Counted from the stretch's first letter, positions 15,661 through 46,900 are shown. The stretch is DNA of 64,000 nt from Thalia democratica (GCA_965202585.1 OZ241829.1:20708001-20772000), one strand, 5' to 3'. Numbers and translations are program-made. The notes: generated by a model from the sequence alone, not told the origin.

Positions 15661-17389
15661 AAATACCAGGTAATAAACTACAAAAAAAATCAGCAATAAT
15701 AAACTAAGATTACAATTGTACCACCCTACTAGCTATATACTATTGGTCAAAAGTTTTAAAGATTACATATGTTTTATGTAAAAACATCAGCACCAGTAAT
15801 GAATTTTTTTAGTTCTAATTTGCGATAAACTGACTTTTTTAAGCGCATTAAGTTATTTTGAGCTTTGAGAGTAAAAATATACTATTTATTTTATGTAAAC
15901 CTGTTATCTGCTTGAAATTTGAATTCTGGTTTGTTTTTAAACATCTAACCGTTTATAAACAATGTTTTATGAATTGTTACAAAAATTTTGATATTAAGAT
16001 TTTTTGAATAACATTTATAAATTTAAAAATCAAAAACATAATTGACACTTTTAGGAACGGCTTTTAAATAAAAATAAACATTTAGGTTGCTTGTAAATAC
16101 TAAATAGTTTATTGCTCCGAAATAAGTCGCGGACTCATTGCACGGTATAGCTTTGTAACTTTTAGAAGATATAAAAATTAGGTCAAAACAAAAAGAAAAA
16201 AAGAAAAGAAAGTTAAGTGTTGTTTTTGCAAAAAAAATTGTTTAGTTTTAATTTCAAACAAAAGCATAAAGTGTTTTCAAACTGCTTTTGAAACACTTTT
16301 ATTAAACAATCTTTGCTCTAGATGAATTATTTTCTTTGCATATACGGTAACTTATTATGACAGACTAAAAAACTTTTAGTTTCTTTCTTAATCATTTCAT
16401 CTAAAAAAAAAAGAATCATCTGTACGGTACCTAGAATTAAAAAAAAAAAAACCACCTAAAAAAGTTTAATTTTTTATTTCAACAACTATTTCAATCAAGT
16501 GGTTATATTAGCCTTCATACGTAATAATATATTTGGAAAATCTTCGGAAGTATAATCGAAATTCAACATGTCTCAGAATAAACAATTTGCAAGCGTTTTT
16601 CGTATCAAAATTAAATTGCACTTATAATATTCTAATTATTTTTTTGTAAAACGTAAAAAAAATGAGTACTTGATGTTGTTGATCAGGTGTTAGATTTTTT
16701 TTGAGGTCACAATGTAAGTTTTTTTACATTAAATATAAGCACATGTGACAATATTTTCTCTGTAAAATCATAGCATTAGTTTAAATAATCATGTTGGTCT
16801 TTAAAAACAGTACTTTTGATAAGTCAATTTAAACTTTTGTAAGCTAGAAAACTTTTTAATAAAATGTTTCCTTTTTTATTTGTATTAACTTAAATTATTA
16901 CTTATAAGATATTTTATAAACTTATTAGTAAGCCGATTGACAACTACTAAACTTTAAGATATATTCCCACATTTGGGTGTTTATTTTTACTTTTTACTAT
17001 AACAACAAACAAAAAAATTACTATTTTTCAACAGTAACTTTCATGGTTTTCTAGTCTAGTTATACTTTTGACAATCTGCTTCAAAAAAAACATAAGACTT
17101 TATTATAATATTATTTACTTCATTCATTAAATAAAAAATTGTTGTATAACGAAGTATTATATTTTCTCAAGTTTTTATTTAGAAAGATCAGAATAAACAA
17201 ATTTTTTGTAAATAAATTCTAGTTTTTAATAAAAATGATTCAATTTAAAAAAAAATTTATCTTCTACATAGTTAAGTACAACAACAAACACATGTTTAAA
17301 AAACAAGTTTTTATTGATCACTGTTTTATTAAACAAAACTTAGTTTCAAGATTTGTTTTATAGATTTTTACAATAATGACAATTAAATA

Positions 17390-17600
17390 TTTATTCTTTT
17401 AAGAATTTATTTTATGAACTAAGTTTCGGTCAAAGACCTCGTCCGTGCTAAAATATGTTAATATAATATAATAAGAGTTGTTTGACCGAAACTTAGTTTG
17501 TAAAACAAATTCTTATAAGAATAATTTCATTATTTCTGCTCTAGTAGTTGAAATTTCTTTATTTGTTTTCTTAAAGCCAAAACATATAATAAAGATAATA
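17390..17600. mobile_element. Two inverted, decayed copies of a hammerhead-bearing short repeat (same family as 43896-44120)
   Basis: Perfect 18-bp inverted repeat at 17417-17434 and 17481-17498. The minus strand of 17416-17448 reads GCA CGGACGA GGTC TTT GACC GAAA CTTAGTTC. Segment 17488-17590 aligns by eye with 44018-44120. Confidence 0.75.
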
Positions 17601-40900: not shown

Positions 40901-43900
40901 AAAGTTTAGTTGTTGTTAGTTTTGTAAAGCTTTACTTTTGTGCATAGCCTGTTATTTATTCGTTAATTTAACTTTTAAAATAAATTATTTAACTATTTTT
41001 AGCGTCATAATGCACACTTGTTTGTGTTGTTCGTTGTAATAAAATTCTGCTGTTATACCTAAAGCTTTTTTAAGTTTCTTAGTTTTGTTGCAACAGTGTA
41101 AAACTTTATTTTTGTGCATAGCTTGTTATTTACCAACTTCGTTAATTTAACTTTTAAAATAAAATATTTACATATTTTAACCGTCTTGGTGTTTTCTTAT
41201 CAGTATTACTGTGTTCAGTTATTTTTTAGTGAACCTGGAGTAATAACGTTAATTTAAGGTTTTTCATAATATTTTTATTCTTCCAGGTTAGCACTTTTGA
41301 CTGGAGGCAACTCTCAATTCAATATCGCATCTGCACTTTCTGGTAACAGGTATAAATTGTTTGATGTTTAACAATAAAAATTTCTTATCCGATATCTACT
41401 AAAACTGTAGTGTGGTAACTGTTTAAAAACGTGTTTTTATTTTTGTAAAAAGAATATAGTTGTACTTTTACTTAAAAAAAATGTAGCTTTGCAATTCTTT
41501 TTTTAACTCAAACTACATGAAATAAAATTATAATAGAAGAGCATGCTTATTATTTGGACTTAAATTTTAAAAAGCTTGTTAGTTTTGTTGAGTAATTTTT
41601 GACAATACTTTCATCGCTACGATGACAACTATGGCTTTAAAAACTCAAAATAGTTTTTATTTCGCAGGAGCTTTATTTCATTTTTACTTTTTTGAATTTT
41701 TATTTATATATTTTTACAGGAACCCCTAAACAGCACAGTTCCTTTTAAACGCATACTGCTACTTCATTTATTTCATACAAAAAAAAATTTCACAGGAACT
41801 TTTATAACTAGTTATTTTTTATTCTCACAGGAACCCCTTAAAAGCACAGTTCTTCTCAAACGCATACTGCTTCTTCTTTTATTTCGTACAAAAATATTGT
41901 GTTTTCACCGGAACTTTTACACTTAGTACACTTTTATTTTCACAGGAACCCACTGACAGCACAGTTCTTCTTGAACGCATACTGCCCGTATCTATACTTC
42001 CAGCTCAACGGACTCCCCGATCTTTCGGAATCGGTGAAGGGATGCTGCAAGCAGTCGTCTTGTTACCACAAATCTCTCGTTAGTGTTTGAATAGTAGTGT
42101 TTGTTACGATTCTTTTACTTAATAGTTATTAAAATCGTTTTAGCTTTTAGTAGACTTCAGTTAAAGTTGAGTTTGTTTTATTACCTTCTTTTGCCAGTCT
42201 AAAAATTTGCATGCAACACCGAGTGAGTTGCCAAGTTATAAAAAAATTATTAAGGTAACAATGTATTGCCTTTATTCTAGATTCTAGAATTTAAAATAAA
42301 GGCAATACATTGTTACCTTAATAATTTTTTCTATGGATATATATTTTTTAACTTGGCAATTCACTAGGCAATCTTGGCAACTTGGCAAACTAGAATCTAG
42401 ATAAAACTATCATACCAATCAGAGGGCCAACAATAATATTTACGATAACTTAAATGTATAAAAGTATAAAATTACTCTTTATTTCAGGGTCAACAGCAAC
42501 AAATGGCAATGTGGGGACAGTGGGGCCAATGGTCCCAGTGTACAGGTAATTATTGTGACTATTTATACATAAATGTATATATATATATATACAGAATTGT
42601 TTTAAGTAATGTCTTGTTTTTCTAATATAACTATCTCTTACGTACGTTCACAAATCAAAATATGGAAAAAAATATTTTGTATATTTGTAACTATGGTAAC
42701 TAGTAATGTATATTATCTGTTCAAAGTTGTATTTAGTAACTCTAACATTATCGGTTTTTATGTATGTACACAAACAAACACTAAAATAAAAATGTTTTCT
42801 GTATGAGTAAAAAGGCAACTGTATAAAAAATAGTTATGTAGTGCAAACAACAAGTTGACAAACTATAACTTCACATAAACAATGAGTGATGTTGTAATAA
42901 GAATTTTTACAAAACTTACAAAATGATAATTTAATAAACAACCCACAAAAAACAGGAGGATGTAACCAGCCTGGGCAGCAGCTGCGCACCAGGGCTTGCA
43001 TGATAATGGGGCAGGTCACGCAGGGCTCGTTCTGCACTGGGGGCAGCCAGGCGGGCACGGACAGGAGAAACTGCGTGGGACAGTGCGTGGGTCCCATATT
43101 CAACTGGGGGCTGTGGTCGGCGTACGGTAACTGCATCGGTGAGTAACAAAATGGATTTTAAACAACTGATAATAATTTTTGGAATTTAGTTTTGAATAAA
43201 ACATTTAGCTAGGGCCATTGGTCAGCTTATTGCAGCTGTTTTAGTAAACAAAACAAAACACTTATTTAATTATACTAGTTAATACAAGCTTAAGTGGGTT
43301 TCCTGGTCAACGAATAGTAACCGTATAGGTGAGTATCGACTACTTAAGAGTACAGATAAATCATATTAAACAATTTAAAAGAGTACTTCATTGAAATTTT
43401 TAAAATCTAAATAAATACAAGAAAATGTATAAAATTTAGTGTCTGCCAAAAAGTTAAAATCCATAAAAGTCTGTTCGGAAAAGTACTTCTATCTAGAAGT
43501 GATAATTTTTATTTTTACTAATTATAACGCGGCCTTGTTTAATCAATTACAATACCTTAAGTTATTCCAAGCTACTTTAAATAAAAATAAATAAACATTT
43601 TTGCAGGCCAATGCAGCATGGAAGGATACCAGCTGAGGTCCCGAGTCTGCCAGAGTCCCGACGGAGCCCGCGGCGACAGTTGCCCCGGCAACCAGGAGCA
43701 GAGGCTGACCTGCACCTTGGCCCCGTGCCCCTGCAGCTGGACGGCGTGGTCGGCGAGTGGCAGCTGCTCGAGGACTTGCAGGCCCCAGGGCACCCAGTTT
43801 TACGGGAGGCAGACCTACACCAGGGACTGCAGAAGGTAGGAAAATATCAAGGACATAAATACTTTGCTGCATTTTTAATTAAGTTAAGATATATGAATTT

Positions 43901-46900
43901 ATTCTTTTAAGAATTTCTCTTATTTAAATAGAATTGTATTTGAATAAGATTTATTTCTTATTTAAATAGAATTCTATTTGAATAAGATTTATTTAAGCAC
44001 TGACGAGGTCTTTGACTGAAATTTATTTTGAAAAGTAAATTCTTGAAAGATTAAATTCATTACTTCTTCTCTAGCAGTTGAGATCTCTTTATTTGTTTTC
44101 TTAAAACCAAAACGTATAACAAGTTAAGATATATGTCAAAATACTAATAAAGTATTCTTGAAAGAGGTAAGTTTTACTGCCTTTATACACAAAAACCTAA
44201 ATTTTATACTTTTCAACAAATGTTAAAACAGTTTTAGTTTTTTTACAATCTGCTTTTATTGTGAAAACCAACTTTAAAATCCGAGGTTTACAAAAAATAA
44301 CTGATAAACTAAAACATCTAACAGAGAAGGCACCAACGCCCCATGCAATTCAAACTCATGTCCGGGCTCGGCATCCAAACAGGAAATTTGCGCCTCAAAC
44401 GTGTGTCCAAGCTACCAGATAGGTTGGTGGACACTAACGCCCTTAAACATAAAAATATCTGTAGTTTAAATTTAATAAACAGTTTTACGTATATAAAACA
44501 CTGAAAGATAGTTCAAATGAGGACACTAATGTCCCTACTTGAAATTCCGTGTATCTTCAATTTATAGTTTTATTTTCACGGCTGTCTTTACACCTTTAAC
44601 TTAAAAAAAATAAAAGTTGACACTTTCTAAAAAACCCGCACATTTTGGTAGAATAGAACTTAAAGCGAAAACTAAGTTTTCTTATCAAGTAAGTTATCTT
44701 GACATATGTTAAGTAATAATTTTTATACAATTTAAGTATACTCAAACAATCTTGATCAATTTTCAAATTAAACGGTTAAAACTCTCTGTCAAGCCACAAA
44801 ACACCAACTAAAGCTTCATTTATAGTTAATATTACTTTACTTGAAATATTAAATTAATAATGGATTAACAAAATAATAAAAAAATAGTAATTTACTTTAC
44901 TTTCCAGGAGCGTGGACTCCGTGGGGACGGTGCAACCAGAACTGCCAGCAGGAGAGGATGCAGATGTGCACTTTGAACGGGAGGACGGCCGCAAGGAACA
45001 CTTGCCAGGGACAGCGGCAGACCAAGAAGTGCCAGACAGGACTTTGCAGGCCGCTGAGGTCTTGGGTGAGTTGACATACTTTTTATAAAGTGTAAATTAT
45101 AGAAAAAAAATCGGATTTATTGAGACCAGACTGTACAGACCGCTGAGGTTTTGGGTGAATTGAAGGATGATACATGCTATGTGTAACTATTTTAAAACTA
45201 GAGACCAGCACTGTCAATTAATTATACATTGTCGATAGAATAGCGACAGTAATTTTTAGACTCTGTTCAAAACGCGTACTTATCTGGTAGATTGCTGTAC
45301 GTACATTTCTTTTTTTTTTTAATTTTTATTGATAAACGAGGTACTCGTGTGTCGAGGGTCATGCTCTCGTGTAAACCAGAACTTACCACAGCTTACTGCT
45401 CCCTAAAGTTTGTACAAAGATAGTGCAAAGTGTTCTATAAGTTTTAAAACGTGAAACTGTATAAAAATATGCGAAATAGAATGGATGAACATGTGTTTTA
45501 TAATACCAAATGTTTAGTCTTGTTACCTGCTACTAAATAGTAATATTTCTACTTTAAATGGTTAAAAGTCTGCATAAAAGATTTCAAAAATACGACACGC
45601 TTATTTTAAACACTAAATGTTTAATTAATTTTTACCGAGCGTTTTTTTCCTGAAAGTGAACCAACATTCACTAAAACTTCTTCTTCACAGGTGAGCTGGT
45701 CCAACTGGGGCTCGTGGTCCGACTGCGTGCACACGGGCCTGTCCAGCAAGACCAGGTTCCGCATATGCCTGTACCTGGGCAGGAGCGATTCGGAGATTGG
45801 CGACGACATCTGCGAGTACGTGCACCAGAACACGAAAGCGGTTGAGAGCGCAGGGTGCTCGGGCGGCAGTGGGGGCAGCTTCAACTGTTAGTATTTGTTT
45901 GTTTTGATGCGTTTTTATTTAAGTTTTAGTTTTTATTTAATTTGATGTATTTTAAGGGAAATAATTTAATATAAATTTGAGTTCATTTGTTTAATAGTTA
46001 ATAATCCTAATTCATTTAGTTAGTAATCCAACTTGTGCAAACAATTGTAATATAGATAGATTTAAAATTATTAAAATTTTTAGTAGTGTTTTCGATTGGA
46101 TTAATTTAGAAGCCATTGGTTTTTTAATAAGGAAGCCTGTTTTATGTAAGCAAAAATATTTTGACCATACTGTTTTTTTATTTTCGTAACATTTTATAAG
46201 GATTGTTTCCATTTTATTTATGTTTAGTTTTACTGTAGATCAATTATAACGTAAATGGACTTATTTGATTTTAACTGTTACTAATTGCTTTTTTCTTTTT
46301 TTAATCTCTTGATTACTTTATGATTACTTGATTACTTGGTTACTTTATAAGTTTGTAAAATCTTATTATTTGTTAGCATTGTACTCTACTGAAGAGAATT
46401 GCTCGAAATATATTTAGTCTTTCTAAAATTGTGTGTCTTGTGTAACTTATTGTATACTTAAATATACTAAATATTTTTTTATTTATTTTAATGCTTCTAT
46501 TGTTAGTTTTTATCTATGTTTTTATCTTTTTTATGTAATGTTTAGACACTAGTTTATATTGTTTTTAACGTATTTTTAAGGATTAATTCAATTTAGTTGT
46601 TTGTCCATATATCTTTTAAAGTTTCTGCTTAACAACTTTAACTAGTTACTATATTTAATTTATATCTAATTTACACCATATTTAATTACTATATTTTATC
46701 ACATTTCGATACACAATAAGTTTCATTATATTCAGTTAAGTAATTTTTTTAATGGTCTTATGCTTGCTAACGTCTTTACTTCCCGCTTACTTTTTTACTT
46801 ATTTATTTAGTTAACAATTTTTAAGTAATTAATATAATTGATTTGTTAATTTTTATCTTATTATGATACGGAAGAAGTTCTGTTATATTCTTTATGTAAC

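Follow-up and report, generated by a model that had tools for sequence, protein, structure and literature searches.

A hammerhead-bearing retroposon family of Thalia democratica carries the host spliced leader and probably derives from trans-spliced Penelope-like elements

Results

A spliced-leader insert in an intron of a thrombospondin-repeat gene

A 64,000-nucleotide (nt) stretch of the genome of the tunicate Thalia democratica (GCA_965202585.1, OZ241829.1:20708001-20772000; hereafter the window, with positions counted from its first letter) contains a short insert that joins the spliced leader (SL) of the species to a hammerhead ribozyme sequence and that represents a worn member of a non-autonomous retroposon family of high copy number. 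The insert lies in an AT-rich intron, in the sense orientation, of a GC-rich gene encoding thrombospondin type 1 repeats (43600-43836 and 44323-44420), with a thrombospondin type 1 motif of the CSWTAWSASGSCSRTC type just upstream. It spans 225 bp (43896-44120) between two 100% identical copies of the 15-nt direct repeat AAGTTAAGATATATG (43881-43895 and 44121-44135), the left and right target-site duplications. An exact SL 16-mer, ATTCTATTTGAATAAG, occupies positions 43971-43986, and copies with one mismatch are found at 43933-43948 on the plus strand and at 43919-43934 and 43957-43972 on the minus strand. SL matches with at most two mismatches number 4 against 0.26 expected, a count reached in 0 of 100 shuffles. 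The exact SL is followed by ATTT instead of GT, and the motif CTGACGA begins 13 nt on, at 44000. The start of the insert is an inverted copy of its own 3′ part (43893-43916 versus 44037-44060; 24 nt, 92% complementary). An earlier note on this DNA, made from the sequence alone, had described the insert, its flanking repeats, the SL copies, the ATTT, the spacing of the core and the inverted piece, each of which we recovered in place.

Read from its left end, the insert begins with the outer remnant of an inverted left arm (43896-43916, minus strand), which is the reverse complement of approximately 44040-44060. Both pairs of SL and inverted SL form a 38-bp tandem duplication (43918-43955 and 43956-43993, 97% identical), and the same C-to-T change is present in the inverted SL of both units. 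The first unit consists of an inverted SL and an SL, with one mismatch each, and ATTTATT; the second includes the palindromic center of the insert (43956-43986), in which the inverted SL overlaps the exact SL by 2 nt. The right half continues on the plus strand with the 5′ strand of hammerhead helix I, ATTTATTTAAGCA (43987-43999), which starts at the putative trans-splice junction and was delimited from unspliced relatives and by folding. It is followed by the hammerhead core (44000-44028), recognized from its sequence and from the intact architecture of family copies, and by the 3′ strand of helix I with a spacer (44029-44060), which extends to a first 3′ terminus ('end 1') at which the inverted arm stops. 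A Penelope-type tail (44061-44120), confined family-wide to right arms and hence to one side of the insert, runs from there to a second 3′ terminus.

Compared with other family copies, the copy in the window is damaged. Its core retains CTGACGA (44000-44006), GAAA (44018-44021) and H17 at 44028, after which cleavage would be predicted. Helix II (44007-44017; GGTC/GACT with a TTT loop) has a G.U wobble in place of a G-C pair, helix III (44022-44027) is degenerate, with U at both 15.2 and 16.2 (U.U for C-G) and loss of the stem, and position 1.3 has changed from C to A. Through these substitutions (hammerhead positions 11.1, 15.2, 16.2 and 1.3), helix III is lost and helix I is weakened. Approximately 50 nt of the left arm, including the inverted hammerhead, has been deleted relative to the intact arms of loci L002-L029. 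Judged by its sequence, this copy is old, rearranged and defective, and it is probably inactive; after insertion, it would have lost part of its left arm, undergone the 38-bp central duplication and accumulated mutations in helices I and III. Of the proposal that the insert is a ribozyme-bearing SL retroposon, family membership stands, and the hammerhead of this particular copy is broken.

A BLAST search of the window with an intact copy identified a second, more degenerate family member at 17383-17591 (plus strand), with an inverted arm and a tailed, 5′-truncated right arm; its center consists of unrelated AT-rich DNA and contains no SL.

The family genome-wide and the spliced leader of the species

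In the 801-Mb genome of the source, we obtained 2125 first-look candidates, with scored matches approximately 90% identical to the window copy. Each family locus matched on both strands, and the family comprises over a thousand copies. One anatomy is common to the 29 further copies examined, typically a target-site duplication, an inverted left arm, the SL, a type I hammerhead, the tail and the second copy of the duplication. The left arm, ~85-100 nt long, corresponds in reverse complement to the segment that runs from the SL to a fixed inner terminus (...AATAAATATA). The right half after the SL contains the 13-nt helix I strand, CUGANGA, GGUC-UUU-GACC, GAAAC-UUA-GUU with the presumed cleavage site, 31 nt and the tail, which is 64 nt long and absent from left arms in nearly all copies. 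Exact target-site duplications of 8-18 nt (median of 14) flank 25 of the 30 copies, which bears out the reading of the 15-mer in the window as a real target-site duplication.

The 16-mer is the spliced leader of Ciona intestinalis (PMC7986045, PMC1488885). In the T. democratica genome, it occurs exactly 1299 times, compared with 9 times for the reversed control, and SL followed by GT occurs 358 times. Loci L061-L064 combine a conserved GC-rich upstream region, the SL, GTAAGT and a 6-bp stem-loop and are, on this architecture, genuine SL RNA genes. Those on contig C26 (from C26:7129 on) occur once per 15,085-bp tandem unit, and further ones are found near the ends of C9 and C10; the SL unit reported for Ciona is 264 bp, whereas the tandem unit here is 15 kb. 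These conserved genes, together with identity to the published Ciona leader, uphold the assumption that the 16-mer is the SL of this species. The window copy does not itself resemble an SL RNA gene, having ATTT after the SL and flanks unrelated to those of the true genes.

An acceptor at the point of spliced-leader joining

Unspliced relatives of the family carry a splice acceptor where the SL is joined in the others. The pattern (C or T)AG directly 5′ of (A or G)TTTATTTAAGCACTGANGAGG, which covers the helix I strand and the core, has 638 copies, against 0 for a reversed-pattern control, and the SL-joined form, with AAG at the acceptor point, is present in 381 arms. Thirty sampled acceptor copies share a conserved upstream sequence, with a T-tract and TAG right before ATTTATTTAAGCA. 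The master copies with an AG acceptor for which the earlier note had called are represented by these 638 sequences, whose pyrimidine tract and TAG fall exactly at the SL join. SL-form copies have a complete SL exon joined at the acceptor point of their unspliced paralogs, along with the hallmarks of retroposition. Because acceptor-bearing relatives exist at the exact join, splicing explains the join, and template switching or SL gene capture does not. A chimera of the latter kind, produced when a reverse transcriptase (RT) switched template to SL RNA or when an SL gene was captured with its promoter as in a short interspersed element, might be expected from the abundance of SL RNA genes in this genome, and U6/L1 template-switch chimeras are known in mammals. 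However, the copies contain the 16-nt exon only, never the GTAAGT part of SL RNA and no SL gene upstream sequence, and the join always falls at the AG acceptor of the unspliced relatives, as in splicing. We consider such a chimera highly improbable.

One unspliced copy, together with over 600 bp of its flanks, is repeated at four C1 positions (L073, L075, L076 and L078, at 3.29, 5.36, 5.45 and 5.57 Mb, respectively), which represent a segmental duplication carrying a copy of the element.

Arm divergence, central junctions and haplotypes indicate that the SL lay at the RNA 5′ end at each insertion and was not inherited as internal sequence. Arm divergence is 3.0% within a copy versus 5.1% between copies (permutation p < 0.0002), and diagnostic variants agree in both arms (C or A at N7, C-G or U.G at helix I pair 1.3 and TTT or TTC). 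The central junctions are variable: some overlap by 0-3 nt, some contain fillers of 3-5 nt or more, and some have additional partial SLs. Even copies of a single haplotype differ in how the SL 5′ end is joined. Each of the four main haplotypes of the family (family A) is found in both SL and unspliced form. If a single hairpin-shaped master had instead acquired the SL once and produced full or 5′-truncated copies without recurrent trans-splicing, the shared left-arm end of most copies would follow, and 5′ truncation would account for the short left arms of L004, L030 and L019. Such a master does not predict variants that are concordant in both arms of a copy, junctions that differ within one haplotype or the same four haplotypes in SL and unspliced form, and at least seven unrelated hammerhead families and several families of long interspersed nuclear elements (LINEs) also begin with the SL. 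We regard a single SL-bearing master as improbable, and the variable junctions and paired haplotypes likewise speak against the SL being a fixed internal block, a possibility that the earlier note had raised against its own proposal.

In some copies (L029, L009, L024, L007 and L028), one or two extra partial or mutated SLs precede the complete SL in tandem, which may reflect renewed trans-splicing of transcripts from SL-form copies or slippage at the cap.

Hammerheads and LINEs joined to the spliced leader

The catalytic core, C3-U4-G5-A6-N7-G8-A9 and G12-A13-A14, is present in both the window copy and the family copies. Among sampled arms, haplotype-defining core variation is confined to N7; the genome-wide patterns had the other core positions preset. 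Helix II, closed by G10.1-C11.1, reads GGUC/GACC in family A and CUCG/CGAG, CUCC/GGAG, CUGC/GCAG or GCU/AGC in other SL-linked families. Intact helix III (A-C-[UUA]-G-U-U) is short and near-palindromic, and H17 is U or A. Helix I of family A, which comprises 3 bp, an internal loop and 8 bp, appears in the minimum-free-energy fold (z = -2.3) and has an analogous layout in families B and C; helices I and II were both recovered by free-energy folding. Based on the core, G10.1-C11.1, helix III, H17, folding and cross-family pairing, the structure is a predicted type I hammerhead. A short near-palindromic helix III is typical of metazoan type I hammerheads (PMC4209133), and such short-helix-III forms have been reported to be active as dimers or with protein help (PMC4209133, PMC11167929).

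The arrangement recurs beyond family A: the pattern of SL, 5-35 nt, CUGANGA, 8-38 nt and GAAAC has 373 matches in the genome and 0 in the control. At least seven hammerhead families have the SL abutting helix I, and pairing in helix II is preserved despite sequence differences between them. Helix II in these families is 3-9 bp long (for example, in L036, L058, L065 and L046), and families B and C have an extra unpaired U beside it, as described for the minimal hammerheads of Penelope-like elements (PLEs).

Other multi-copy families also start with an exact SL (L033, L035, L038, L045, L049, L056 and L059; G000 C1, C2 and C4). Within 20-80 nt, these families encode an ORF1-like coiled-coil protein with a Baculo_FP_2nd domain; PHD-like zinc-finger motifs follow further 3′ and, in L035, the start of an AP endonuclease. 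The ORF1-like protein, zinc fingers and AP endonuclease start identify these families as LINEs, and their mRNAs, too, would have been SL-trans-spliced before retrotransposition.

Link to Penelope-like elements

Longer relatives connect the family to PLEs. In one insertion (L079/L080), 700-bp inverted arms that are 98% identical flank a 389-bp center coding for a GIY-YIG-like, Cys-rich fragment; the 64-nt tail is confined to one of the arms, the other bears the inner terminus, and the duplication measures 12 bp. Related GIY-YIG-like fragments are encoded in L081, L086 and L096. In the protein Atlas, the fragments group with "GIY-YIG domain-containing" clusters (scores of 0.95-0.97), and an exhaustive HMMER search identified 5181 relatives, with the fragment aligning to residues ~450-620 of ~700-amino-acid (aa) proteins (E down to 1e-36). 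An alignment of ten of these ~700-aa homologs shows an invariant Y-R-D-D RT motif and, toward the C terminus, CxC...CP...C, IVYKA and YIGST. The corresponding Atlas clusters carry RVT_1 and GIY-YIG; a cluster look-up of the homologs returned no names, and a PDB profile search returned a retron-type RT alone (E = 0.86). Many intact open reading frames (ORFs) of 707-727 aa are present in the genome, including a 707-aa group that is 86% identical to the fragment, and the acceptor lies ~760 nt 3′ of the ORF stop codon, as estimated from coordinates.

Canonical PLEs are defined by the fusion of an RT to a C-terminal GIY-YIG endonuclease, and an adjacent inverted 5′-truncated copy and a 30-40-bp tail at one end are PLE hallmarks (PMC8557442). 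In the unspliced relatives, the sequence 5′ of the module leads into a GIY-YIG-like ORF, and the insertions combine the inverted 5′ copy with a one-sided tail and target-site duplications of variable length. The GIY-YIG ORF upstream in longer copies, the inverted 5′ copy and the one-sided tail support the mobilization by Penelope that the earlier note had proposed. That note had also spoken of a retrozyme-like family; the family does bear a ribozyme sequence and would be moved by PLE enzymes, but its probable source is the PLE's own 3′ (pseudo-long terminal repeat (LTR)) module, not a separate retrozyme gene.

Intact PLE ORFs (707-727 aa, no stops) occur as head-to-head pairs, with starts 335-730 bp apart, or as tandems 466 bp apart (G000 C4:91382168-91386748, C4:34944412-34948951, C7:48680867-48685802 and C2:9031217-9035995). 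Such paired intact ORFs suggest recent activity, and the short gaps between them would fit two 5′ untranslated regions, each composed of SL, hammerhead and tail. The head-to-head pairs with starts just 335-375 bp apart (C4:91384270-91384646 and C4:34946514-34946849) are suggestive of full-length PLE mRNAs carrying the SL.

The long inverted arms and AT-richness of the element, which Rfam scores as a miRNA-like hairpin, could also call to mind a miniature inverted-repeat transposable element (MITE) or foldback DNA transposon whose inverted repeats contain an SL-like palindrome by chance. Elements of this kind have inverted repeats that are terminal at both ends and duplications of fixed length. 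Here, by contrast, the right arm is not terminal but followed by the 64-nt one-sided tail, the duplications range from 8 to 18 bp, left-arm lengths vary, the sequence of relatives extends into a GIY-YIG ORF with homology to RT/GIY-YIG proteins, and the 16-mer is the exact SL of the species. The asymmetric ends and variable duplications rule out a MITE or foldback element, whose probability we put at practically nil. The Rfam matches in question, to the plant miRNA precursors MIR5185 and MIR6288 (E ~1e-11, below gathering; L002, L008, L013 and L014), are a long-hairpin artifact.

A model for the origin of the insertions

We propose that the insert family originates from an SL-trans-spliced 3′ module of a PLE, reverse-transcribed by PLE enzymes on both target strands, and assign this reading a probability of roughly 0.8. 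The source would be the PLE 3′ (pseudo-LTR) region downstream of the RT/GIY-YIG ORF, which comprises, in this order, a TAG acceptor with its pyrimidine tract, a type I hammerhead that opens with helix I at the acceptor, the first 3′ terminus and the 64-nt tail. Transcripts across such a copy would be SL-trans-spliced at the acceptor to yield a capped RNA of ~165 nt consisting of SL, hammerhead and tail. PLE enzymes would then make a staggered cut in an AT-rich target, producing the 8-18-bp duplications, and initiate cDNA synthesis internally on each of the two target strands, starting from the tail end on one strand and from the inner terminus on its counterpart. Both cDNAs would run to SL nucleotide 1 and join there, giving a head-to-head inverted repeat that has the SL at its center and a tail at just one end. 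The order of these events, priming on both strands and the use of uncleaved RNA as template are what we infer from the anatomy of the copies.

Work on PLE enzymes in vitro provides a precedent, in that two adjacent internal RT start sites delimit the tail, both target strands are extended and unprocessed RNA is the main template (PMC11167929). Genomic copies here keep the uncleaved predicted site, in agreement with the use of unprocessed RNA by the PLE enzyme in vitro (PMC11167929). On the same SL-trans-spliced origin, the earlier note had favored fold-back priming, in which the first cDNA loops back at its SL end and primes its own second strand. Such a snap-back would place the center of the palindrome exactly on SL nucleotide 1, as observed, and the 2-nt AT overlap often seen there could seed the hairpin. 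A self-primed strand should, however, include the tail, whereas the left arm stops at the fixed inner terminus in nearly all copies, and fillers and non-overlapping junctions (L013, L014 and L021) misfit a snap-back; the two internal starts and the extension of both target strands by PLE enzymes in vitro (PMC11167929) also point elsewhere. Because the left arm stops at the inner terminus without a tail, the ends argue against simple fold-back and for two cDNAs from two start sites. We judge fold-back unlikely, although the least so of the alternatives, and the inverted arm fits priming on both target strands better.

RNA libraries contain the family in marine metatranscriptome contigs only (runs X1-X4). 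Its presence there implies that the animal or its larvae were sampled in plankton. When the four runs were mapped to an unspliced copy, depth was 10-50x higher downstream of the acceptor. The contigs include ones that bridge the unspliced acceptor, one with an SL-like loose end at the acceptor and several with opposite-strand joints; such depths and joints are confounded by the copy number of the repeat, by possible carry-over of DNA and by chimeric contigs. No circular RNA junction was seen in these contigs, which are weak data for the purpose, and a search for a single locus with both an SL-form and an unspliced copy found none. The proposal that an SL-trans-spliced RNA served as the template is supported by the DNA copies, in which the SL is joined at the acceptor point.

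Several results weigh against the origin that we propose. At E <= 1, Rfam returned no hammerhead match for ten family loci; for a 106-nt stretch, its best match was Hammerhead_3 with the wrong topology (17.5 bits versus a gathering threshold of 48.5), and no hammerhead was called in the window copy. Pfam made no GIY-YIG call on the short GIY-YIG-like fragments and detected RVT_1 weakly, in one of the ~700-aa homologs. The candidate autonomous partner, a PLE of the 707-aa group, was chosen by 86% protein identity alone, and none of the loci examined includes the N terminus of a PLE. The preference for both-strand priming over fold-back comes from end structure, not observation, and the mixture of metatranscriptome contigs shows neither trans-splicing, cleavage nor circles at the acceptor.

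Discussion

If PLE transcripts are trans-spliced as we propose, trans-splicing would provide both capped full-length PLE mRNAs and mini-templates composed of SL, hammerhead and tail. The mini-templates would be promoter-independent, arising from any 5′-truncated copy that is read through, so that trans-splicing at an internal acceptor could carve a non-autonomous mobile element from an autonomous one. The DNA-encoded SL would also serve as a natural marker of the exact 5′ end of the template. This is relevant to PLE integration, of which the tandem and inverted structures, the tail at a single end and the hammerhead's role are poorly understood. The host SL marks template nucleotide 1 in hundreds of independent insertions, so that one can interpret the center of the inverted repeat as the meeting point of two cDNAs at the RNA 5′ end and the two outer ends as two RT start sites, in natural in vivo support of the recent in vitro findings. 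More broadly, the retrotransposons of this SL-trans-splicing chordate may routinely use the host SL, with PLEs trans-spliced at the helix I acceptor, LINEs tagged and insertions built from two cDNAs that meet at the cap, a generalization to which we give even odds. SL-tagged LINE and PLE copies would give tunicates a built-in marker of retroposition of a kind that has so far been used mainly in dinoflagellates. A literature search turned up no paper connecting SL trans-splicing with PLEs or hammerheads, or describing such a combination in tunicates.

Earlier work has described hammerheads in PLEs as well as non-autonomous elements derived from PLEs (PMC4209133, PMC7229834, bioRxiv 10.64898/2026.07.22.740005). 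Like PLEs elsewhere (PMC4209133, PMC8557442, PMC11167929), the family described here has a terminal-repeat hammerhead, an inverted 5′ copy, a tail at one end, two 3′ termini and variable duplications in AT-rich targets. Its hammerheads on opposite strands recall the dual hammerheads of Schistosoma, which lie 100-700 bp apart on opposite strands (PMC4209133). In Drosophila virilis Penelope, too, the intron acceptor lies at the 5′ edge of helix I, a hint that splicing and the ribozyme may be linked in a conserved way. The family differs from PLEs in that its acceptor serves SL trans-splicing, its genomic copies carry the 16-nt host SL at the center of the inverted repeat and its tail is 64 nt, compared with 30-40 nt.

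Animal non-LTR retrozymes are likewise short and non-coding and have a type I hammerhead, and an origin from PLE pseudo-LTRs and movement by PLE enzymes have been proposed for them (PMC7229834, bioRxiv 10.64898/2026.07.22.740005). Retrozymes, however, consist of tandem head-to-tail hammerhead repeats that give circular RNAs by double self-cleavage, whereas the copies here are dispersed, single and inverted head-to-head, with one forward hammerhead and the uncleaved site kept. Sm-alpha, the SINE-like hammerhead repeat of Schistosoma (Ferbeyre et al. 1998, cited in PMC4209133), is also a high-copy, short retroposon with a type I hammerhead and a short helix III, in a host that uses SL trans-splicing. 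Sm-alpha copies are largely arranged in tandem, unlike the family here. We know of no report of an SL at the 5′ end of Sm-alpha.

The closest counterparts for the leader itself are SL-bearing retrocopies in other lineages. Dinoflagellate retrogenes carry relict DinoSLs (PMC6050394, PMC5585692), and partial leaders on LTR and LINE loci of flatworms have been suggested in passing (PMC12582326). As in those cases, a DNA-encoded leader at the 5′ end marks a trans-spliced template, and the tandem partial SLs of L009, L024 and L029 resemble the relict leaders of recycled dinoflagellate retrogenes. In contrast to the dinoflagellate and flatworm examples, the host here is an animal with a Ciona-type SL, the template is a ribozyme module of a retroelement, not a host mRNA, and the full 16-nt SL is kept, at the center of a PLE-type inverted repeat.

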